DNA of 64,000 bases from NCBI RefSeq assembly GCF_000007005.1, contig NC_002754.1, one strand, 5' to 3'. This DNA comes from Saccharolobus solfataricus P2 (GTDB lineage: Archaea > Thermoproteota > Thermoprotei_A > Sulfolobales > Sulfolobaceae). The notes beneath the pieces were generated by a model, which was not told the origin of the DNA, made no database searches, and saw only the letters and a list, made by a program, of their open reading frames with translations. A program made the position numbers and the translations under genes. This document shows positions 4,892 to 60,007 of the stretch, piece after piece; position 1 is the first letter of the stretch, and each line of letters starts with the position of its first letter.

Positions 4892-5682
4892 CACTTTCAA
4901 CTGAGAAAGACCTTTTGCTCAAGGTCGATAAAGTATTTCCATGGGAAACGTTTAGGGGTAAACTTGAGTCACCTTACTCCAAGAAACCCAAGTGGGACGT
5001 TATATTACTCCTCAAAGTCCTATTAATCAAGTTCGTCTACGAAATCTCTTGGTTAGAGGGAGAAATTAGGGATAGCAAAATGTTTATGAAATTCTTAGGT
5101 GGGAAAGTCCACCAAAAAAGCATTCTTCTTCTACAAGAAACAGTTGTTGATGAGGGGGAGAGAATGTGGACAACTCTAATGACTCAACAAGGCCTTAGAC
5201 AAGGTGATTAACGAGTATAGGGAGAAGGGTTTCGAACTTGGGGTAGGAAGAGAAAAAACGACAAATTCGAGAACTATTACATAATTGATACATTCTTCCG
5301 CGAGGGAAAGAGGAGTTTTCAAACCGGTCTAGAGAAGATCTCACTTGACCTTGATGAGATGAAATTTAACGACGATTTTCTCCTCATGAGTTATAGTGTT
5401 TCTAAGCTCAAGTACTTTACAAGCTTTAGTATAAGGGTGGTTGGGGTAGGAAGCATGGTAAGTCATACTTTGGTTTTAAGGTTTGTTGAAAGGAGGACTA
5501 ATTTTGTTTAAGGTTGGGTTGGCTAATTTGAGTGATTTGGCCTTTTCCTTTGATGGTTTTAAGCTCTTGGCTGATAGGGCTTCTAGGAAGAACATCTTGG
5601 TTAAGGGCGTTAGTTCTGCTAGGCTTCCGGTTGAGGGATCAAGATTAGGGAAGGTAAGGCTTCAACAACGACTTTGAAGGGT
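4892..5682 (+). mobile_element. Degenerate IS5-family transposase fragment (duplicate of 19687-20491)
   Basis: KVDKVFPWETFRGKL...LLLKVLLIK..Y IS5-like N-terminus; many stops; near-identical second copy. Confidence 0.65.
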
Positions 5683-9648: not shown

Positions 9649-10880
9649 CCTATACAGGTTTTATTAGTCGGGTAGAGTAATACTCTCCTCGACTGGGGAA
9701 ACATGGTCGAGACACTATCTGAAGCAAAGTCTTCGGCTACGGGCGTGACTAACCCCTACCGTCGGACTGAACATTGTGATAAAATTCACGAATATAGGTG
9801 TGACAAAGGGGTAGGGGTAATAGGAATAGACGTATCAAAAGATTATTTAATAACTAGTAGGGGGAGGGTGAGAAAATACGAGAACAACAAAGAGGGATAT
9901 GAAGAGATACTTGAAATGAAACCTTGTACAATAGTCCTAGAACCTATGGGAGTTTACGCAATAAGGCCTTCACAATACTTCAAGGAGAAAGGAATAAAAG
10001 TACTACAGGTTAGTCCAAACATGTTATCAAGAGAAAAGGAGTTTAGGGGAAAGAAAACAGATTTTTACGATGCTGAAAAAATAGAAAACATGGTTGATAA
10101 GGCAAAGGAGTACGAGTATAACCCCTTAAGAGAACTAGTAACACTTTACCTCTTCCTCAAGGACATAGAAGTAAAGTACAAGAACAGGTTAGAGAGAACA
10201 CTATTCCTAGTAAGCGACAACAACAAGATAAGCAAGGAAAGGTTAGAAAAACTCGCAAAAGGAGATTTTACACAAGAAGAACTATACCAACTAGAATACA
10301 CACCAATAGTAGTTGAAGAAATCAAAGTCCTAGCAAAAACACTCCTAGAAACGCAAGAGAAATTGAAAGAAGTTAGGAGGATGATCGAGGAACAAGTACC
10401 GGATAATCACGTTTTATTAACAATCCCGGGAATTGGGAGGCTTGCAGCTGGTATTATTATTGGTATTGTTGGTGATATTAGGCGTTTTCCTAAACCAGAA
10501 TCATTTGTTGCCTATTGTGGTCTAGATCCCGTAGTGGAGAGGAGCGGGAAGGCTGTGGTAAGTAAGGGTATTTCGAAGAGGGGTAATAAGTACTTGCGTA
10601 GTTTGCTTTACTTCTTGGCAGGGAGGAATTATTCTAGGAATCCTAATTTGCTGAAGTTTTATGAGACACACAAGGATAGGCTTCACGGTAGGAAGTTGTA
10701 TGCTGCTTTGGCTAGGAAGTTGGCAAGGGTTGTATGGAGTGTATGGTATAATAATAAGCCTTATGAGCCTAAATAGGTGAACCCTTCCCCTTAATCGCCA
10801 CCTGGGTTGAAAGGACCCACGTGGCAATGTTAGCTAATACTATGCTTGAAGTTTGACCGAAAGGTTTATTACTGAACGCC
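9649..10880 (+). mobile_element. IS110-family element (~1230 bp, ISC1229-like), transposase ORF 9703..10776
   Basis: DEDD N-terminal GIDVSKD, C-terminal YCGLDP...SG...ISKRGN; no TIRs; CC core at both junctions (9649-50, 10879-80). Confidence 0.9.
9664..9800 (+). ncRNA. Putative bridge RNA of IS110 copy at 9.65 kb
   Basis: Same scaffold as 25878-26013. Donor guide ACTGAAC matches own right end 10871-77; target guides differ from the other copy. Confidence 0.65.
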
Positions 10881-11366
10881 TCTCGCTTGCATCTTCACAA
10901 GCGGTGTAGATGTAGTGTGAGGGTAAGTCCTTGTGCTTCTCCCTCTCAGTCTTGTAAACTCCAGATTTAATCCTAGTGAATGAGGTAGTCTTATTTACGA
11001 GTCCATAATTTATTGTGTCCTCTAGTATCTTTTTATACTCTTCTTCGACTTCCTTCAACTTCTGGTAGGTCTTATTGTCTACTTTAACCCTTAACTTCAC
11101 TGTCCTCTCCACTTAACTCACCTATCAACTTTTTTACACCTTGAACGAGGACTGTCTTCTTATGACTCCTTATTCCGTAAATTTTCCCAGCGAATGATGT
11201 AATAATGGAAATCAAATCTTCCACAAGTTCTTGTGTAGCATCCTTAGGTTCTTCTCCGAGAACAACCTCAATCCTAACCCCCATCGTTGAGAAGAACTCC
11301 TCAAGGTACTCAAATCCAAAACGCGTTAGTCTATCTTTGTATGTTATGAGGATAATGTCGACGCTC

Positions 11367-12550
11367 CTTATATAAAACATATTAGTCAGATCTGTGTAAT
11401 ACAGATCTGACTGGGGTGTAGGCCGTGACGCTCCTTGGGCTTAAAGCCCGATGGGGAGCTTGGCCGCCTCCAATTCGGACCGGAAGTTGGGCAAAAAGCC
11501 CGAATAAAACATAAGGGTGAGTATACATGGAGGCCCCAGTTGCAGGAATAGATGTATCAAAAGATAAATTAATCGTGTATTTTCAAGGTAAACTCTACGA
11601 GTTTACTAATGATAGGCAGGGGTTTGAGGAGATAAGGAAGATCTTGCCTAGTGGTTGCAAAGTGGGTATTGAGAGTACTGGAGTTTACCACGTTAACCTA
11701 GCAAAGTACTTGAATAATGAGTATGATGTTAGGATTATTAATCCCTTTATACTCAAGAAGTTCAAGGGTTTTAGGGGTAAGAAGAGTGATAAGAATGATG
11801 CTAAAAAGCTAGCAGAAATAGTTGTAAGTATGGGTAGTGGGTTTGTAACAAGTGATGCTAGGGAGTTAACAAGCCAGTGGGATTTTGTTATTAGGAGTAT
11901 TGCTAGGGTTAAGAATAGGTTGAGGAGGGATTTGGTACTTTTAGGCTATAGGGATAGTTTGTCTAAGAAAAACTTGGAGGAGGTTTTGAGGGGTGGTGGG
12001 GATAGTGTTGTCTTGTCTGAGGTTAGGTTTCTTTTGGAGGAGCTTGAGAGGCTTGAGGGTAGGAAGAGGGAGATTGAGAAGGAGCTTGAGGATTTTGTTC
12101 CCAAGGATAGTTTGATTTTCACCATTCCCGGTATTGGTAAAACCTTGGGTTGTATTATTTTGGCTAGGGTTGGTGATGTTAGGCGCTTTAGTGATAAGAA
12201 GAGGTTTGTTGCTTATTGTGGTCTCGACCCAGTTGTTGAGTCTAGTGGTAAGAGTGTTGTCTCAAGGGGTATATCCAAGAGGGGTGATGCTGTTTTGAGG
12301 AGGGCTTTTTACTTGGCAGCTTTGACTGCTATTAAGGTTAATCTTATTATCAAGCGTTTTTATGAGGAGCACAAGGGTAGGCTTAGGGGTAAGAAGTTGA
12401 TTGTTGCGTGTGCTAGAAAGTTGGCTGTTATTACTTGGGCTGTGCTGTATTATAATAAGCCCTTTGATGCTAGTGAGTAAAGCAGGTTTCATTGCGTAAG
12501 TAGTGTGAATTATGCTCGATTTTCAAGGAAAAGTTTTTATACCGGAAGCT
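11367..12550 (+). mobile_element. IS110-family element (~1185 bp, ISC1190-like), copy A; transposase 11527..12480
   Basis: GIDVSKD...EST...KND..DA DEDD motifs, YCGLDP; CT core at 11367-68 and 12549-50. Confidence 0.93.
11384..11520 (+). ncRNA. Putative bridge RNA of ISC1190-like copy A
   Basis: 11-bp 5' hairpin. GACGCTCCTT (11427-36) equals left junction 11360-69. GGGGAGCTT (11453-61) is complementary to the right junction. ACCGGAAG (11479-86) equals the right end 12541-48. ATAAGG (11511-16) is complementary to the left end. Confidence 0.8.
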
Positions 12551-12968
12551 TCCCTCAACCAGTTTGAAGAGCTTCAGCAATCCTTTCCTTTGCGTGTTCA
12601 ATCCGCTTGCAATATCTTTTAGTACTTCAACTACCTTGTAACCCTTTGCCGTTGCGTAATTCGTGAGATAGTTTATTTGTCTCTCCAAGTCCTCTTTCTG
12701 GTCTGCTGATGAAACTCTTGCGTAAATTACTGCTCTTGGTTCTTCCCTCCTCTCTAAGTACTTCTTAATCTCGCTGTAAGGTATCCTGTACTTCCCTCCT
12801 TCAGTTGTTACTACCCTTATTTTCCCTTCTCTAATCCACCGTAGGAGTGTTGAGTATGAAATGCCGAGAAGTTGGCAAGCCTCCTTAGGTCTCAGTAGTC
12901 TTTCCACAAAATTGGTTGATAATAAATGAATATAAAAAGATTTCTATTAACACGAAAAAGGATTCAGC

Positions 12969-13025
12969 CCCAGTTAGGTCTGTATTACTCAGACTTAACT
13001 AATATGTTTTATATAAGGAAGTCAG
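12969..13025 (-). mobile_element. Left-end remnant of a diverged ISC1190-like element inserted in an IS605 right end
   Basis: Reverse complement reads CTGACTTC-CT-TATATAAAACATATTAGTTAAGTCTGAGTAATACAGACCTAACTGGGG, cut by the IS607 left end. Confidence 0.75.
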
Positions 13026-25718: not shown

Positions 25719-25802
25719 CCTATATAGGTTGAAAGGACCCACGTGGCAATGTTAGCTAATACTATGCTTGAAATATGACTGAAAGATTTATTACTGAACG
25801 CC
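25719..25802 (+). mobile_element. 84-bp non-autonomous miniature of the ISC1229-like IS110
   Basis: Left end CCTATATAGGTT fused to right end GAAAGGACCCACGTGG...TTACTGAACGCC; CC cores at both sides. Confidence 0.8.
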
Positions 25803-25862
25803 ACTTTTTAAGGGATCATGCACACTCACCCTTAAGTCATTAGGCCCTAGTCGAGGGAAACA

Positions 25863-27092
25863 CCTATATAGGTTTATTAGTCGAGGAGAGTAATACTCTC
25901 CTCGACTGGGGAAACATGGTCGAGAGGGAAACTGAAGCGAAGTCTTCGGGTAGTGGCGTGACAAACCCCTACCATCGGACTGAACATTGTGATAAAATTC
26001 ACGCATATAGGTGTGATAAAGAGGTAGGGGTAATAGGGATAGATGTATCAAAGGACCATTTAATTACAAGTAGGGGGAGGGTGAGAAGATACGAGAACAG
26101 TAAGAAGGGTTATGAGGAAATCCTCAAGATGAAACCTTGCACAATAGTCCTAGAGCCTACCGGAGTATATGCAATAAAGCCTTCACAATACTTCAAGGAG
26201 AGAGGGGTAAGAGTACTACAAGTCAGCCCAAACGTGTTATCAAGAGAAAAGGAGTTTAGGGGAAAGAAAACAGATTTTTACGACGCAGAAAAATTAGAAA
26301 ACATGGTCGACAAGGCTAAGGAGTACGATTACAACCCCTTAAAGGAATTAGTAACACTCTACCTCTTCCTAAAGGACATAGAGACGAAATACAAGAACAG
26401 GCTAAAGAGAGCACTATTCCTAGTAAGCGATAACGATAAGGTAAGCAAGGACAGGTTGGAAAAACTTGCGAAAGGAGATTTCACACAGGAAGAACTATAC
26501 CAACTTGAATACACCCCCTTAGTACTTGAGGAAATCAAAATCCTGGCTAAAAACCTCCTAGAAACGCAAGAGAGGTTGAAGGAGGTTAGGAGGATGATTG
26601 AGGGGCAAGTCCCTCAAGACCACGTCCTATTAACGATACCAGGTGTTGGGAGGCTTGCAGCTGGGGTTATTATTGGTGTTGTTGGTGATGTTAGGCGTTT
26701 TCCCAAGCCAGAATCATTTGTTGCCTATTGTGGTCTAGATCCCGTAGTGGAGAGGAGCGGGAAGGCTGTGGTAAGTAGGGGGATTTCCAAGAGGGGTAAT
26801 AAGTACTTGCGTAGCTTGTTCTACTTTTTAGCAATGAGGAGTTATTCTAGGAACCCAACCTTATTGAAGTTTTATGAAACACACAAGGATAGGTTGAAGG
26901 GTAAGAAGTTGTATGTCGCTTTGGCTAGGAAGTTGGCAAGGGTTGTTTGGAGTGTTTGGTATAATAATAGGCCTTATGAGCCTAAATAAGTAAGCCCTCC
27001 CCCGAATCACCACGTGGGTTGAAAGGACCCACGTGGCAATGTTAGCTAGTACTATGCTTGAAGTTTGAGCGAAAGATTTATTACTGAACGCC
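25863..27092 (+). mobile_element. IS110-family element, 1230 bp (ISC1229-like), transposase ORF 25916..26989
   Basis: DEDD and YCGLDP motifs; CC core at 25863-64 and 27091-92. Confidence 0.93.
25878..26013 (+). ncRNA. Putative bridge RNA
   Basis: Four guide segments match own flanks and ends (see findings). Confidence 0.85.
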
Positions 27093-33048: not shown

Positions 33049-33059
33049 ATATCACCTAG

Positions 33060-34571
33060 CTGACTTTCTCCCCGCCCTGAAAGGGCGATGGTTCCCCTTC
33101 CAGAGGGATCATCGTTCCCACCATCGATTCGGGTTTACATCTCTCATCTGGTGGGCAGTCGAGTGGATCAGAGATCCACTCCCATTCGAATAGGGGACTT
33201 TCATCCATAACGTCTAGTCCCTTAAGAAATACTAGATGCTCCTCCCACAGTCCCATTAAGCCCTCAATCGAGCTGGGGAGCTTCCGGTATAAAAACTTTT
33301 CCTTGAAAATCGAGCATAATTCACACTACTTACGCAAGTGATGAAACCTGCTTTACTCACTAGCATCAAAGGGCTTATTATAATACAGCACAGCCCAAGT
33401 AATAACAGCCAACTTCCTTGCACATGCAACAATCAACTTCTTACCCTTTAACCTACCCTTGTGCTCCTCATAAAAACGCTTGATAACAGGATTAACCTTG
33501 ATGGCAGTCAAAGCTGCAAGATAGAAAGCCCTCCTCAAAACAGCGTCACCTTTTTTAGAAATACCTCTCGATACAACACTCTTACCACTAGACTCAACAA
33601 CTGGGTCAAGACCACAATAAGCAACAAACCTCTTCTTATCACTAAAGCGCTTAACATCACCAACCCTAGCCAAAATAATACAACCCAAGGTTTTACCAAT
33701 ACCAGGAATAGTGAAAATCAAACTATCCTTGGAAACAACATTCTCAAGCTCTTTCTCAATCTCCCTCTTCCTAGTTTTAAGCCTCTCAAGCTCCTCCAAA
33801 AGAAACCTAACCTCAGCCAAGACAATACTATCCCCACCCCTCAAAACCTCCTCCAAATTCCTCTTTGACAAACTATCCCTATAGCCTAGAAGTACCAAAT
33901 CCCTCCTCAACCTATTCTTAACCCTAGCAATACTCCTAGTAACAAAATCCCACTGGCTAGTCAACTCCCTAGCATCACTTGTTGTAAACCCACTACACAT
34001 ACTTACAACTAATTCCGCAAGCTTTTTAGCATCATTCTTATCACTCTTCTTACCCCTAAAATCCTTGAACTTCTTGAGAATAAAGGGATTAATGATCCTA
34101 ACATCATACTCACCCATCAAGTACTTTGCTAGGTTAACGTGGTAAACTCCAGTACTCTCAATACCCACTTTGCAACCCTTAGGTAAGATCTTCCTTATCT
34201 CCTCATAACCTCGCTTATCATTAGTAAACTCGTAGAGTTTACCTTGAAAATACACGATTAATTTATCTTTTGATACATCTATTCCTGCAACTGGGGCCTC
34301 CAATTATACTCACCCTTATGTTTTATTCGGGCTTTTTGCCCAACTTCCGGTCCGAATTGGAGGCGGCCAAGCTCCCCATCGGGCTTTAAGCCCAAGGAGC
34401 GTCACGGCCTACACCCCAGTCAGATCTGTATTACACAGATCTGACTAATATGTTTTATATAAGGAGCGCCGTTAGCATCACTAAAAGATATCTCAACAAG
34501 GAAGTATTTAAATATAAGGGGCTATCCATCCCCGCTGGCGAGGCTTTCCTCCCCCTTAACCTCCAATTTTT
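33060..34571 (-). mobile_element. ~330-bp tnpB-less IS605 MITE (SMN1-sized) interrupted by IS110
   Basis: TTAC-preceded left end at 34571; right end ...GAAAGTCAG at 33060; retains tnpB tail ([13 protein letters not shown]-like); 329 bp after removing IS110. Confidence 0.75.
33279..34463 (-). mobile_element. ISC1190-like IS110 copy B, transposase 33353..34303
   Basis: Highly similar to copy A; CT core at both junctions; target GGCGCTC-CT-CCCCAG. Confidence 0.93.
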
Positions 34572-43050: not shown

Positions 43051-43219
43051 CTATCTTTTCACGAAGTTTATAAACTTTTATGTTAACGTTAGAATAGAGA
43101 GCACCACCATGAACTCTATGAGCAATGTGAGAGGGAGGAAGATGCTCAATGAAACCCCCATGTCCTCGAAGGGAGTGGTTTGACTACCGCTCCCGTAGAC
43201 GGCACGGGGAGGGAAATAA

Positions 43220-46200
43220 GGGCTGAATCCTTTCTCACGTTAATAGAAATCTTTTTATATTTATTTATTATCAACTAATCTTGTGGAGAGACTACTGAGG
43301 CCTAAGGAGGCTTGCCAACTGCTCAGCATTTCATACTCAACACTCCTACGGTGGATTAGAGAAGGAAAAATAAAGGTGGTAACGACTGAAGGAGGGAAGT
43401 ATAGGATACCTTACAGCGAGATAAAGAAGTACTTAGAGAAGAGGGAAGAGACGAGGGCTGTAATTTATGCAAGAGTTTCGTCAGCAGACCAGAGAGAAGA
43501 CTTGGAAAGACAAATAAACTACCTAACGAACTACGCAACGGCAAAGGGTTACAAGGTAGTTGAAGTACTGAAAGATATTGCAAGCGGGTTAAACACACAA
43601 AGGAAAGGATTGCTTAAGTTATTCAAACTTGTTGAGGGGAGCTTCCGGTATAAAAACCTTTCCATGAAAAATCGAGCATAGTCCACACTACTTACGCAAG
43701 TGATGAAACCTGCTTTACTCACTAGCATCAAAGGGCTTATTATAATACAGCACAGCCCAAGTAATAACAGCCAATTTCCTTGCACAAGCAGTAATCAACT
43801 TCTTACCCTTTAACCTACCCTTGTGCTCCTCATAAAAACGCTTGATAACAGGATTAACCTTGATGGCAGTCAAAGCTGCAAGATAGAAAGCCCTCCTCAA
43901 AACAGCGTCACCTTTTTTAGAAATACCTCTCGATACAACACTCTTACCACTAGACTCAACAACTGGGTCAAGACCACAATAAGCAACAAACCTCTTCTTA
44001 TCACTAAAGCGCTTAACATCACCAACCCTAGCCAAAATAATACAACCCAAGGTTTTACCAATACCAGGAATAGTGAAAATCAAACTATCCTTGGAAACAA
44101 AATCCTCAAGCTCCTTCTCAATCTCCCTCTTCCTACCCTCAAGCCTCTCAAGCTCCTCCAAAAGAAACCTAACCTCAGCCAAGACAATACTATCCCCACC
44201 CCTCAAAACCTCCTCCAAATTTTTCTTAGACAAACTATCCCTATAGCCTAAAAGTACCAAATCCCTCCTCAACCTATTCTTAACCCTAGCAATACTCCTA
44301 GTAACAAAATCCCACTGGCTAGTCAACTCCCTAGCATCACTTGTTGTAAACCCACTACACATACTTACAACTAATTCCGCAAGCTTTTTAGCATCATTCT
44401 TATCACTCTTCTTACCCCTAAAATCCTTGAACTTCTTGAGAATAAAGGGATTAATGATCCTAACATCATACTCATTATTCAAGTACTTTGCTAGGTTAAC
44501 GTGGTAAACTCCAGTACTCTCAATACCCACTTTGCAACCCTTAGGTAAGATCTTCCTTATCTCCTCATAACCTCGCTTATCATTAGTAAACTCGTAGAGT
44601 TTACCTTGAAAATACACGATTAATTTATCTTTTGATACATCTATTCCTGCAACTGGGGCCTCCAATTGTACTCACCCTTATGTTTTATTCGGGCTTTTTG
44701 CCCAACTTCCGGTCCGAATTGGAGGAGGCCAAGCTCCCCGTCGAGCTTTAGGCCCAGAGGAGTCAACGGCCTACACCCCAGTCAGATCTGTATTACACAG
44801 ATCTGACTAATATGTTTTATATAAGGAGTGTCGACATCGTATTAATAACATACAAAGATAGGTTAACAAGGTTCGGTTTCGAGTACATTGAGGAGTTCTT
44901 CTCAACCATGGGAGTTAAGATTGAAGTAGTTTTCGGTGAGGAGCCCAAAGATGACGCACAAGAGCTAGTTGAGGACTTAATCTCAATCATTACCTCATTC
45001 GCTGGGAAAATTTACGGAATGAGGAGTCACAAGAAAACACTCCTAGTTCAAGGTGTAAAAAAGTTAATAGGTGAGTTAAGTGGAGAGGACAGTGAAGTTA
45101 AGGGTTAAGGTTGATTATTCTACATACTCAGCACTTAAGGAGGTCGAGAAGGAGTACAGAGAGGTTCTAGAGGACGCAATAAATTATGGGCTGTCAAACA
45201 AAACTACCTCCTTCACCAGGATTAAAGCTGGAGTTTACAAGACTGAGAGGGAGAAACATAAGGACTTACCCTCCCATTATATTTACACAGCTTGTGAGGA
45301 TGCAAGCGAGAGATTAGACAGTTTTGAGAAGTTAAAGAAGAGAGGTAGGAGTTACACTGAGAAACCGTCAGTGAGGAGAGTTACTATTCACCTCGACGAT
45401 CATCTGTGGAAGTTCAACCTCGACACGATTTCAATTTCCACAAAGAGGAGTAGGATTCTCATTTCACCAACCTTCCCTAAGATCTTCTGGAGATATTATA
45501 ACACGGAGTGGAGGATTGCGAGTGAGGCCAGGTTTAGGCTGATGAAGGGGAATGTTGTAGAGTTCTACGTCATTTTTAAGAGAGATGAGCCTAAACCTTA
45601 TGAACCTAAAGCGTTTATTCCCGTCGACCTTAACGAGAATTCGGTCTCGGTGCTCATCAACAGTAAACCCTTATTGCTTGAGACTAACACTAAGAAAATT
45701 ACTCTGGGCTATGAGTATAGGAGGAAGGCAATAACTACTGGTAAGTCAACTAAGGATAGGGAAGTGAGGAGGAAGTTAAAGAGGCTGAGGGAGAGGAATA
45801 AGAAAGTAGACATTAGGAGGAAATTAGCTAAGCTAATCGTTAAAGAGGCTTTTGAAAGTAGGAGTGCAATTGTCTTGGAGGACTTGCCAAGGAGAACTCC
45901 GGAGCATATGATAAAGGACGTGAAGGATAAACAGCTTAGGTTGAGGATTTATAGATCTGCATTTTCCTCAATGAAGAACGCTATTATTGAGAAGGCTAGG
46001 GAGTTTGGTGTCCCCGTGGTCTTAGTTAACCCATCTTATACTTCCACTGTTTGCCCAATTCATGGGGCGAATATCGTTTACCAACTCGATGGGGGCGATG
46101 CCCCAAGGGTTGGTGTTTGTGAGAAGGGGAAGGAAAAGTGGCATAGGGATGTAGTTGCACTGTACAACTTAGCGAGGAGAGCTGGAGATGTGAGCCCCGT

Positions 46201-47108: not shown

Positions 47109-47478
47109 TCTACTATAGTTTAACTGGCTAAACTAATATTTAAAATTTAACGCTAATGAGCAACAACAAGTTTTATAATTTGTATAAATAATGTAGATTA
47201 TGCTAAATTTTCAAAGAAAAATTTTATAAAAGAAGCTTTATAATCCATTTTACTACACAATTCGATACATTTTTGGTCATGTCATTATATTCGACAATTG
47301 TCTAAAACTTTCGAAAAAGACTGAATTAGTAAGGATTAAAAACGTTAATACTGAAGGTTAAATGGTTTTAAAGTATTGCTTTCCCTTCACCGAGAAATTC
47401 TTCAGTTATGTCAAACTTGCCTCATGGTTTAACTCTATTGTAAGTTAAACTTTAATAATCGTTAAATGAATATATCTC

Positions 47479-49091: not shown

Positions 49092-51544
<2,453 letters not shown>

Positions 51545-51733: not shown

Positions 51734-52111
51734 CTAAGTAATTAGAGCGACTTTCAGTTCATTAAATTCGTCAGCTACTTTTAAAAAATCAGTATCCTTA
51801 GTCACTAGAGTTAAATCTCTATTGATAGCTTGGGCGGATATTAATATATCGAAATATCCTATCAACTTTCCCTTATCTCTTAATCTCTTGTATATCCTTG
51901 AAGCAATAATGGAATCTTTTTTATTAAGACCTATTACATTAAATGCTGACAAAAAGTCGAGGATTTTATTTTCCTCAACTTTGCCGAGTAATACTTCAAA
52001 AATTGTTAATGTACTAACATAAAAATCTTCAGAATTGGAAATAATTTCCTTTACCTTTGCATTACCTTTCAAATATTCAATAATTGCTGAGCTTTCTATT
52101 AATACTTTCAT
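51734..52111 (-). CDS. vapC: PIN toxin VapC
   Basis: LIESSAII, GYFDILISA, LVTKD. Confidence 0.88.
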   Translation of the reverse strand: MKVLIESSAIIEYLKGNAKVKEIISNSEDFYVSTLTIFEVLLGKVEENKILDFLSAFNVIGLNKKDSIIASRIYKRLRDKGKLIGYFDILISAQAINRDLTLVTKDTDFLKVADEFNELKVALIT

Positions 52112-52331
52112 CAGTTATCTTCCTCACTTCTTTGATTTCTTTCATAATCTCTTCTGCTTCCTCTTCATTAAGAATTCCGAAATACTTCTCCAATTTCCTC
52201 CTCCTCAAGGTTAGAGATTCTTCTATAAGTTCCTCAATTATTTCACTAAAGCTTTTGTCCCCTTTTATTTCTACCAATTTCTTATAGACGTCGTCCCTTA
52301 TCATTATCGTTTTCATATATGATGTATACAT
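52077..52331 (-). CDS. vapB: VapB antitoxin (DUF217-like)
   Basis: MKTIMIRDDVYKKL..IKG.KSFSEII. Confidence 0.85.
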   Translation of the reverse strand: MYTSYMKTIMIRDDVYKKLVEIKGDKSFSEIIEELIEESLTLRRRKLEKYFGILNEEEAEEIMKEIKEVRKITDESINRKLSNY

Positions 52332-59300: not shown

Positions 59301-60007
59301 AGTACCTCGTGTCCCTGGCCCTAACGGGTGATCACGAAACGATAAACAAGTTGCTTGAGGGGCATTTGTGGGTGCTGAACGCCGTTAGGAGCGTCTCGGT
59401 CCTGACTAGGCTTATGCTCAACGCCCTACTCAGTCCAAGGGGTAGGTTAAGCAGCGAGCTTAAGGGTAAGCTTAGCGTCAACCCTGAGGAGTTGATTTAT
59501 GCCTTTGGATATGATAAGCTTCGTAAGTACCTGCCTGCGTTAAGGGTTGCCCTTGGTATTGCGAAGCCTGAGGTTGGAATTAAGTTGTGTGAAGAGTTTA
59601 ACGATGAAGTTTGCATAGATTTCGTCTTGGCAGTTAAGGGAAACAGTGCTGTTGTTAAACAGTTAAGAGAAGGAGTAATTAATGCTTTTAACAATTCGCT
59701 TAAGGGATTTGGTTTTGACGTTGAGTCGTTGATTAATGAGTTTAGGGGGTTGGTGAGCGGGCTTGATGGCAGGTCCCTAGTCCAACTAATCGCCCCCTCA
59801 AACTCAATGGCTCAGTTAGCCCTAATGCTCCGCGCATTGATTAATGGTAATAAGGAACTAGCCAAGGCACACGCACTCTATGGAGCTATTTATTATTCCA
59901 GGAAGTTGCTCAGGAGGTTGTACCTTGAGGTCTATAAGGAGTGTTGCGACTTGGAGAGTGAGTCGTTTAGGCTTGCCTTAGCCAGGCTCTTCTTCTTCCA
60001 CGTTTAG
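56375..60007 (+). pseudogene. Large P-loop NTPase with coiled coil, STAND-like core and TPR-like helical C-terminus; split by in-frame TAG at 58079-81
   Basis: GPKGIGKST Walker A, LILYDP Walker B, GHALIARL; second ORF starts in frame at 58085; GC about 47% in a sampled line versus AT-rich flanks. Confidence 0.7.

Follow-up and report, generated by a model that had tools for sequence, protein, structure and literature searches.

A predicted bridge RNA in the left end of an archaeal ISC1190-type IS110-family insertion sequence

A 64,000-nucleotide stretch of Saccharolobus solfataricus P2 DNA (NC_002754.1), hereafter the window, carries an IS110-family insertion sequence (IS) of 1,182 bp at 11369..12550 on the plus strand, referred to here as copy A. 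Copy A is an autonomous ISC1190-type element of Saccharolobus/Sulfolobus that most likely transposes by a bridge-RNA mechanism of the IS621 type, with its noncoding leader acting as the bridge RNA, and we assign this reading a probability of roughly 85%. Judged from sequence, the predicted ISC1190 bridge RNA adds to a known mechanism an archaeal case that was to be expected but had not been described, and NCBI already names proteins of this kind "RNA-guided transposase."

The limits of copy A were set by alignment of the four copies found in the window and by the junction sequences. The CT core lies at 11367-11368, just outside the left end, and again at 12549-12550 as the final two bases of the element. 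The left target half-site with its core, GACGCTC-CT, occupies 11360..11368 (plus strand) inside the tnpA gene of an IS607-like host element, and the right target half-site, TCCCTC, occupies 12551..12556 (plus strand). The right end closes with ACCGGAAG-CT (12541-12550), followed by TCCC; in element orientation, with slashes marking the boundaries, the junctions read GTCGACGCTC-CT/TATATAAAACA ... ACCGGAAG-CT/TCCCTCAAC. The interrupted host gene lies on the minus strand (12907..12470 and 11380..11084) and encodes a protein with MerR helix-turn-helix and resolvase domains, an IS607-like serine recombinase. Joining the two flanks through a single CT leaves the host peptide uninterrupted (...KLVEGRSVDIILITYKDRL...) and restores its reading frame, indicating that the insertion was scarless, with no duplication beyond the shared core. 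Terminal inverted repeats and target duplications are absent from the ISC1190-type element, and CT is present at both junctions in all four window copies. A first-pass annotation made from the sequence had drawn the element from 11360 to 12556, which takes in flanking DNA; the element proper is the shorter interval given above. The sequence strings quoted in that annotation were all found where it had placed them.

The noncoding ends of copy A are unequal, with 158 nt on the left (11369-11526) versus 70 nt on the right (12481-12550). Between them, an intact gene at 11527..12480 (plus strand) encodes a DEDD recombinase of 317 amino acids with two Pfam-defined domains, DEDD_Tnp_IS110 (PF01548) plus Transposase_20 (PF02371). 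Against the NCBIfam model "IS110 family RNA-guided transposase" (NF033542; cutoff 140), the protein scored 215 bits, and it is 84-93% identical to Saccharolobus proteins named ISC1190, in agreement with the earlier assignment to an ISC1190-like IS110 family. Its nearest relatives are from Saccharolobus, Stygiolobus, and Sulfurisphaera. Residues 5-316 align to the solved bridge recombinases of ISCro4 (PDB 9t56; E = 8e-25) and IS621 (PDB 8wt6; E = 1e-22). The catalytic residues D9, E49, D88, and D91 are present, and S240 aligns with the ESG-motif serine of ISCro4. Members of the IS1111 group encode their seekRNA in the right end, as opposed to the left end in the IS110 group. Assignment of copy A to the IS1111 group, with a guide RNA in a long right end downstream of the gene, was rejected because the structured RNA is in the left end and the right end is just 70 nt.

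For the 158-nt left end, the predicted fold (-62.5 kcal/mol; z = -5.45) consists of a 5' hairpin followed by two internal loops, each closed by a stem. The hairpin of the predicted bridge RNA (AGUCAGAUCUGUG-UAAUA-CAGAUCUGACU; 11384..11412, plus strand) is supported by the fold and by cross-lineage compensatory changes. The predicted target-binding loop module (11421..11465, plus strand) is closed by a GGCC/GGCC stem and contains a left guide, GACGCUCCU (11427-11435), an inner stem-loop, GGGC-TTAAA-GCCC (11437-11449), and a right guide, GGGGAG (11453-11458), which opens the string GGGGAG-CTT (11453-11461). The predicted donor-binding loop module (11466..11534, plus strand) is closed by a stem pairing 11466-11472 with 11528-11534, overlapping the ATG at 11527. 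It contains a left guide, ACCGGAAGUU (11479-11488), within which ACCGGAAG occupies 11479-11486, an inner stem-loop, GGGC-AAAAA-GCCC (11489-11501), and a right guide, AUAAG (11511-11515). An AAAACAU segment on the 3' side of the donor loop (11507-11513; left-end positions 139-145) repeats left-end positions 6-12 in the same sense and is absent from several otherwise intact copies and some miniature elements.

Both loops match the DNA that they would have to recognize. The 9-mer GACGCTCCT at the left junction of copy A (11360-11368) is identical to that in the leader (11427-11435), and the left target guide GACGCUC-CU matches the left flank plus core at 9/9 positions in copy A and 8/9 in copy B. 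The 3' side of the target loop, GAUGGGGAG, is complementary to CT-CCCCAxC at 8/9 positions for copies B and D and at 5/9, plus one G.T wobble, for copy A. Its GGGGAG guide pairs with CT-CCCC in copies B, C, and D and with CT-TCCC in copy A through one G.T wobble. On the donor side, ACCGGAAG-UU of the 5' strand corresponds to ACCGGAAG-CT at the right end, the core including one U.G wobble, and AUAAG of the 3' strand is complementary to CT-TAT, that is, to the core and the first three bases of the left end. [quoted passage not shown] The loop assignments of the first-pass annotation fit them as well and gain further support from guide/target and guide/donor covariation among relatives. Its donor string ATAAGG was one base too long: the first five nucleotides pair with CT-TAT, and the final G is unpaired. 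Across the window, GACGCTCCT occurs five times versus 0.2 expected (0/100 shuffles), in three target loops, at the copy A junction, and at one unoccupied half-site, and ACCGGAAG occurs 10 times versus 1.2 expected, with each of the four copies contributing two, a donor guide and a right end (eight in all). The ACCGGAAG matches at 5624 and 20426 and the GACGCTCCT match at 59387, the latter an unoccupied half-site followed by AACG, were set aside as unrelated.

A BLAST search of the region against the window identified four copies, 92-95% identical, whose homology ends at CT on both sides. A second copy had already been recognized in GGCGCTC-CT / CT-CCCCAG, and this copy B is real, but the count of two was too low, as the window holds four copies and a solo left end. 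Copy B (33279..34461, minus strand; left core at 34462-34463) has an intact open reading frame (ORF) of 316 amino acids with a TTG start and both loops identical to those of copy A. Its target is GGCGCTC-CT-CCCCAGC, and its junctions in element orientation are AACGGCGCTC-CT/ ... CT/CCCCAGCTC. Copy C (43640..44823, minus strand; junctions GTCGACACTC-CT/ ... CT/CCCCTCAAC) also has an intact 316-amino-acid ORF and carries a different target-loop module, UUGACUCCUCU / GACGGGGAG. It occupies the same site as copy A in a second copy of the IS607-like element, the element plus its flanks being 92.5% identical to those of copy A; a related locus (L078) has the same insertion site as copy C but an A-type target-loop module. 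Copy D (49102..50279, plus strand; junctions AACTGACTTC-CT/ ... CT/CCCCACCCT) has lost 5 bp from its recombinase gene, and the resulting frameshift leaves ORFs of 170 and 159 amino acids; its predicted bridge RNA is intact. Its target, CTGACTTC-CT-CCCCACC, is the terminus of a tnpB element. The solo ISC1190-type left-end remnant (12968-13017, minus strand; flank GTCTGACTTC-CT) comprises the CT core and left-end positions 1-48, including the 5' hairpin with two compensatory pair changes, and is truncated where copy A's IS607-like host element terminates. At 47185-47237 (plus strand) there is also a degenerate remnant of an ISC1190-like right end (78% identity).

The copies bear directly on the idea that the repeated 9- to 10-mers are subterminal direct repeats, serving as protein-binding sites or left as recombination footprints, with the "left flank" in fact part of the element. 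This would account for the exact same-strand repetition of GACGCTCCT at the junction and 59 nt inside, and of ACCGGAAG in the leader and right end. However, the flank differs among copies A, B, and D while the element stays constant, homology between copies stops exactly at CT, and unoccupied paralogous sites carry the uninterrupted target. The paralogous empty sites and the in-frame join of copy A already place the boundaries at CT, and the 3' sides of the loops are complementary, not identical, to the right half-sites. We consider the direct-repeat explanation barely credible.

Relatives were collected by a metagenome scan with the left-end 17-mer TATATAAAACATATTAG, by protein look-ups, and by a genome scan, followed by BLAST filtering; the counts given here are among the matches listed. 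After chance matches, including gut and marine ones, had been removed, at least approximately 45 true left ends and at least 22 right ends remained. The protein-based genome scan yielded three loci only, its exact peptide patterns being too specific. Look-up of protein P0020 returned three strains with an identical insertion, counted as one added site, and look-up of protein P0059 returned no record.

Sequence variation among the relatives is concentrated in the target loop. In an alignment of 21 intact leaders (A1), column entropy peaked in the target loop, at 0.75-0.85 bits for the 5' side and 0.5 bits for the 3' side, and was 0.00-0.41 bits elsewhere. The 21 leaders had 11 distinct left and 12 distinct right target guides, and 20 of them had identical donor guides. 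Such confinement of variation to the target-loop sides, with a fixed donor loop, is the pattern that would be expected of a programmable target loop.

Left guides also track their own flanks. At 24 sites with an intact target loop, 111 of 168 comparisons over the seven noncore positions were matches, versus 81±9.7 when guides and flanks were re-paired 20,000 times (p≈0.001); a control placed six bases further upstream gave 42/144. The own left guide was matched at 8/9 positions or better in 13 of the 24. Guide GACGCUC-CU is found with flank GACGCTC-CT (copies A and B and loci L033, L078, and L007), and guide UGACUUC-CU with flank CTGACTTC-CT (L038, L080, L050, L074, L075, L130, and L131; one mismatch in L132 and L133). 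L130 to L133 are four further copies from whole genomes, carrying UGACUUCCU in CTGACTT(C/T/G)-CT. The same correspondence was seen for GAUUUCC-CU with TATTTCC-CT (L016/L012), GACGCCU-CU with GACGCCT-CT (L014), UACGCCU-CU with AACGCCT-CT (L086), and UUGAUCUCC with TTGATCTCC in the canonical S. solfataricus ISC1190 (L005). The target loop thus appears to be a swappable module, with GACGCUC, UGACUUC, GAUUUCC, and GACGCCU each going with a different left flank. Right guides averaged 3.2 Watson-Crick pairs over right-target positions 1-4, and most right flanks begin with CCCC opposite GGGG.

More distant lineages show the donor guides changing together with the element ends. An Acidianus manzaensis element (L127), whose protein is 56% identical, has a left end beginning CAT versus TAT and a right donor guide AUGAG versus AUAAG, and its right target guide GGCCGAAAG pairs with the right flank CT-TTCG. 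A second family, ISC1229-like, is represented in the window by copies c1 (9651..10880) and c2 (25865..27092) and elsewhere by L018 and L128. Its joined ends read ACTGAACG-CC-TATA, and its donor loop carries ACUGAACAUU and UAUAGG. Across the three lineages, the right donor guides and ends therefore pair as AUAAG/CT-TAT, AUGAG/CT-CAT, and UAUAGG/CC-TATA, and from ISC1190 to the ISC1229-like family ACUGAACA replaces ACCGGAAG in the left donor guide just as ACTGAACG replaces ACCGGAAG at the right end. In c2, the left guide AGGGAAAC equals its own left flank and the right guide GGUAGUGG is complementary to its own right flank, CC-ACTACC, at 8/8 positions. The c1 right guide, CUACGGG, matches the right flank of L126 (CC-CGTAG) instead of its own. 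The two c1 flanks are not contiguous sequence, which suggests a later rearrangement. ISC1229-like left target guides stop one base before the CC core and do not cover it. An AC or CT core for this family was ruled out, as the donor guides fit CC-TATA. The proposal that CT and CC cores coexist in this genome fits both the junctions and the ISC1229-like 3'-side guides (UAUAGG/CC-TATA and GGUAGUGG/CC-ACTACC), and, given their differing donor guides, the two systems may be orthogonal. A solo ISC1229-like right-end fragment lies at 25727-25805 (plus strand), 56 bp upstream of c2.

The fold is shared across these lineages. Stems are nearly invariant within the ISC1190 group, making within-group covariation uninformative, and a cross-lineage alignment was therefore obtained through a covariance model (R1) built from ISC1190-type leaders only. 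R1 scored the Acidianus leader at 113.6 bits and recovered four of four ISC1229-like leaders over their full length at 41-48 bits (E ~1e-9 to 1e-11). These include both in the window, at 9651-9823 (plus strand; 47.7 bits) and 25865-26036 (plus strand; 42.8 bits), with the same five-helix architecture, and the 5' hairpin architecture that had been proposed as common to both families is real, being recovered by a model trained on one of them. In the cross-lineage alignment, 95.7% of cells were paired and 25 of 41 pairs had compensatory changes on both sides, a number reached by 0/500 shuffles; slid controls gave 3-6 pairs. Within the 5' hairpin, counting its H0 extension, 13 of 19 pairs were compensatory across ISC1190, the Acidianus relative, and the ISC1229-like family.

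Several observations weigh against guidance by this RNA. About one-third of the sites mismatch their own left guide (copy D, L076, L091, L084, L035, L027, and L117). Copy D and L076 have guide GACGCUC and yet flank CTGACTTC-CT, L091 and L084 show the reverse, and these four flanks match the other major guide variant at 8-9/9 positions. Re-pairing of right guides within the group was not significant (p≈0.08), because GGGG/CCCC is nearly fixed there, and the right-guide variant GGUUGUUAG mismatches its one available right flank (L014). The structural evidence has limits of its own, in that the stems show no covariation inside the ISC1190 group and the cross-lineage alignment was fitted to the model and spans three lineages only. 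A search of Rfam 15 returned no match for the leader at the gathering threshold and none with E < 1 over 11340-11560, which may mean that Rfam holds no model for this lineage; weak matches to two C/D-box models (E 5.9-6.9) were treated as noise. Finally, the main targets are themselves repeated elements, so that flank conservation alone could also reflect a site preference of the protein.

Different target-loop modules occur at a shared insertion site in C/L078, D/L129, and L016/L012 (the right flank of L129 differs from that of copy D), which points to module exchange or rearrangement between copies. The differing modules at shared sites would reflect either RNAs acting in trans on copies with the same donor ends or exchange of the target-loop module after insertion.

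Protein-level site preference is also the core of a second alternative, in which the leader is merely a regulatory structure in the 5' untranslated region of the transposase mRNA (it might, for instance, sequester the start codon), the protein picks the target, and loops and flanks agree by coincidence. With its 3' strand, the helix that closes the donor loop does overlap the start codon in ISC1190 and the coding start in the ISC1229-like family, and the main targets, being conserved ends of other insertion sequences, could be recognized by a protein. But a regulatory leader would not explain why the sides of the loops agree with flank and ends in the same strand-specific register as in a bridge RNA, why loop variants accompany different flanks, why donor guides shift together with element ends in three lineages, or why sequence variation is concentrated in the two target-loop sides. 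We regard a purely regulatory leader as very unlikely; the leader could have a regulatory role alongside guidance.

The main targets of the ISC1190-type elements lie in other mobile DNA. The target CTGACTTC-CT/CCCCRCCCTGGAAGGG is the right-end terminus of tnpB elements, on the opposite strand, and at 13 occupied and three unoccupied sites homology begins exactly at CTGACTT. Copy D lies 30 nt past the stop codon of a 382-amino-acid tnpB gene (50309..51457, minus strand; Pfam Cas12f1-like_TNB and OrfB_IS605), and the gene arrangement at L132 is the same. The copy D insertion would separate the presumed tnpB guide-RNA scaffold from the end of its element, and an insertion 8 nt from that end might disable the element's own guide RNA. 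Copy B is inserted ~215 bp into a derivative of that tnpB element that lacks the tnpB gene and resembles a miniature inverted-repeat transposable element (33059-33280 and 34464 to ~34610); the derivative keeps an unoccupied terminal target, TGACTTTCT-CCCC, at 33061-33073. Copies A and C sit in the tnpA gene of the IS607-like element. These insertions into tnpB and IS607-like DNA indicate that the element lands in repeated mobile DNA, like other IS110-family elements.

Transposase-less ISC1190 derivatives of ~310 bp were found among the related loci (L076, L033, L027, L084, L032/L126, L088, and L035), with none in the window. They keep the whole bridge-RNA leader and the right end, share one common deletion junction consistent with a simple internal deletion, and occupy at least seven different sites. 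These derivatives help to weigh a third alternative, that the RNA once guided transposition and the window copies are decaying relics, no longer mobile. Copy D is frameshifted, copies differ by 5-8%, and many related copies are remnants or have deleted loops, all in line with decay. On the other hand, the ORFs of copies A, B, and C are full length with every catalytic residue, and their loops are intact; one and the same 310-bp deletion derivative is present at seven sites and so moved after the deletion arose; and Sulfurisphaera ohwakuensis has at least seven distinct full-length proteins. Loss of mobility in the window copies therefore seems highly unlikely.

Under the bridge-RNA reading, the element would leave its site as a circle, joining ...ACCGGAAG-CT-TATATAAAAC.... 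In the right end (12481..12550, plus strand), a TATA-like box (TTTTTATA; 12534-12541) accompanies the left donor half-site, CCGGAAG, and the CT core. Circularization would place the box 7 nt plus the core before the junction and 24 nt before the first base of the hairpin. Archaeal promoters have a TATA box centered near -26/-27, and as the 24-nt distance is close to the archaeal TATA-to-start spacing, the box could drive the RNA, with a transcript start at about left-end position 13-17. One covarying helix, pairing left-end positions 9-12 with 48-51, sits upstream of this predicted start. ISC1229-like right ends have TTTATTA at the same spacing of box, 7 nt, and core (c1, 10864-10870). We infer a promoter function from sequence and spacing; the junction box would be the archaeal counterpart of the IS621 junction promoter. 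In S. solfataricus, the 3' flank of ISC1229 is reported to be bound by the chromatin protein Cbp1 (PMC10883916). The RNA, bound by the recombinase, would then pair its donor loop with the circle junction and its target loop with a genomic site of the GACGCTC-CT-CCCC type, and strand exchange would follow at CT.

All variants share one donor loop, so the RNA of any variant could mobilize every copy, even copy D with its frameshift and the 310-bp derivatives. Taken further, this would describe a system in hyperthermophilic Sulfolobales with one donor loop and swappable target modules, in which RNAs move copies, dead copies, and 310-bp miniature elements in trans, working with guides of 9 + 6 nt at ~75-80 °C. 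Its main variants would be directed to the core and the final 8 nt at the right ends of RNA-guided tnpB (IS605/IS607-type) elements, parting the guide scaffold from the terminus. We put this wider picture forward tentatively, at somewhat less than even odds. If true, it would mean that an RNA-guided insertion sequence preys on another RNA-guided element.

The system resembles IS621 of E. coli (Durrant et al. 2024, PMC11208160; PDB 8wt6) in having a DEDD-plus-serine recombinase that aligns over its full length and an RNA encoded in the left end upstream of the gene, with a 5' stem-loop followed by the target loop and then the donor loop. In both, the left guide is 9 nt long, reads as the top strand, and takes in the core, and the right guide is shorter and complements the core and right half-site; a CT core and the use of repeated sequences as targets are further points in common. 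Unlike IS621, ISC1190 has an archaeal, hyperthermophilic host, and RNA sequence similarity between the two is undetectable. The predicted ISC1190 RNA is shorter, at ~150 nt from hairpin to closing helix; its left donor guide reads UU opposite the CT core, with the U.G wobble noted above, its right donor guide is a contiguous 5 nt, its donor-loop closing helix overlaps the start codon, and a candidate TATA-box promoter stands at the circle junction in place of a sigma-70 promoter. The bacterial ISCro4, compared by protein alone, is the best solved-structure match. Relative to ISfinder entries, the window copies correspond to ISC1190 by their match to the named ISC1190 proteins, and the second window family matches ISC1229. 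The ~9-bp inverted repeat GTTTTTATA...TATATAAAAC around the ISC1190 donor site exceeds in length the 2-3 bp that have been reported for IS110-group elements.

Other IS110-family elements offer parallels in targeting. IS4321 and IS5075 target the inverted repeats of Tn21-type transposons (cited in PMC11208160). Like these and the IS1111 group, ISC1190 would combine RNA-guided DEDD transposition with insertion at a set point within another mobile element's terminal sequence; unlike the IS1111 group, its RNA is in the left end. The nearest described analogue of the ~310-bp derivatives is MITEPpu9, a transposase-less IS110-family derivative of ISPpu9 presumed to be mobilized in trans (PMC12288879). 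Unlike MITEPpu9, the ISC1190 derivatives, known from related metagenome loci only, keep a complete leader and right end and arose by simple internal deletion.

The surroundings of the copies contain further features. Copy A belongs to a nested IS cluster at 9650-13020, in which it splits the IS607-like tnpA (12907 to 11084, minus strand) and the N-terminal part of an IS607-like tnpB (10840..11112, minus strand) adjoins c1. An Rfam match to the Sulfolobus sRNA Sso133 (43139-43211, plus strand; 100.4 bits) lies just outside the end of the IS607-like element hosting copy C, and the equivalent position beside copy A holds the ISC1190 left-end remnant instead. The solo tnpB gene region at 50280-51457 has copy D at 8 nt plus core from the right-end terminus of its element. 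Beside it, two small overlapping ORFs of 125 and 84 amino acids (51734-52331, minus strand) may represent a VapC/VapB-type toxin-antitoxin pair.

In full-text literature searches, no description of a Sulfolobales bridge RNA turned up, nor any experimental data for a Sulfolobales element. To our knowledge, experimental work on bridge RNAs has dealt with bacterial elements alone. In Supplementary Table 5 of Durrant et al. (PMC11208160), the column "Detected Bridge RNA End" is empty for ISC1190 and ISC1229. The RNA model presented here for both elements would fill this gap, describing two coexisting archaeal lineages with coordinates, structure, guides, and core. The natural series of reprogrammed target loops, each with its insertion sites, would amount to a free "mutational screen" of the important positions. 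Host growth near 80 °C makes the system a candidate source of a compact, heat-stable programmable recombinase and raises the question of how guide duplexes of 9 and 6 nt keep their specificity at such temperatures. For genome annotation, the model would account for the clustering of ISC1190-type elements inside other insertion sequences in Saccharolobus genomes.

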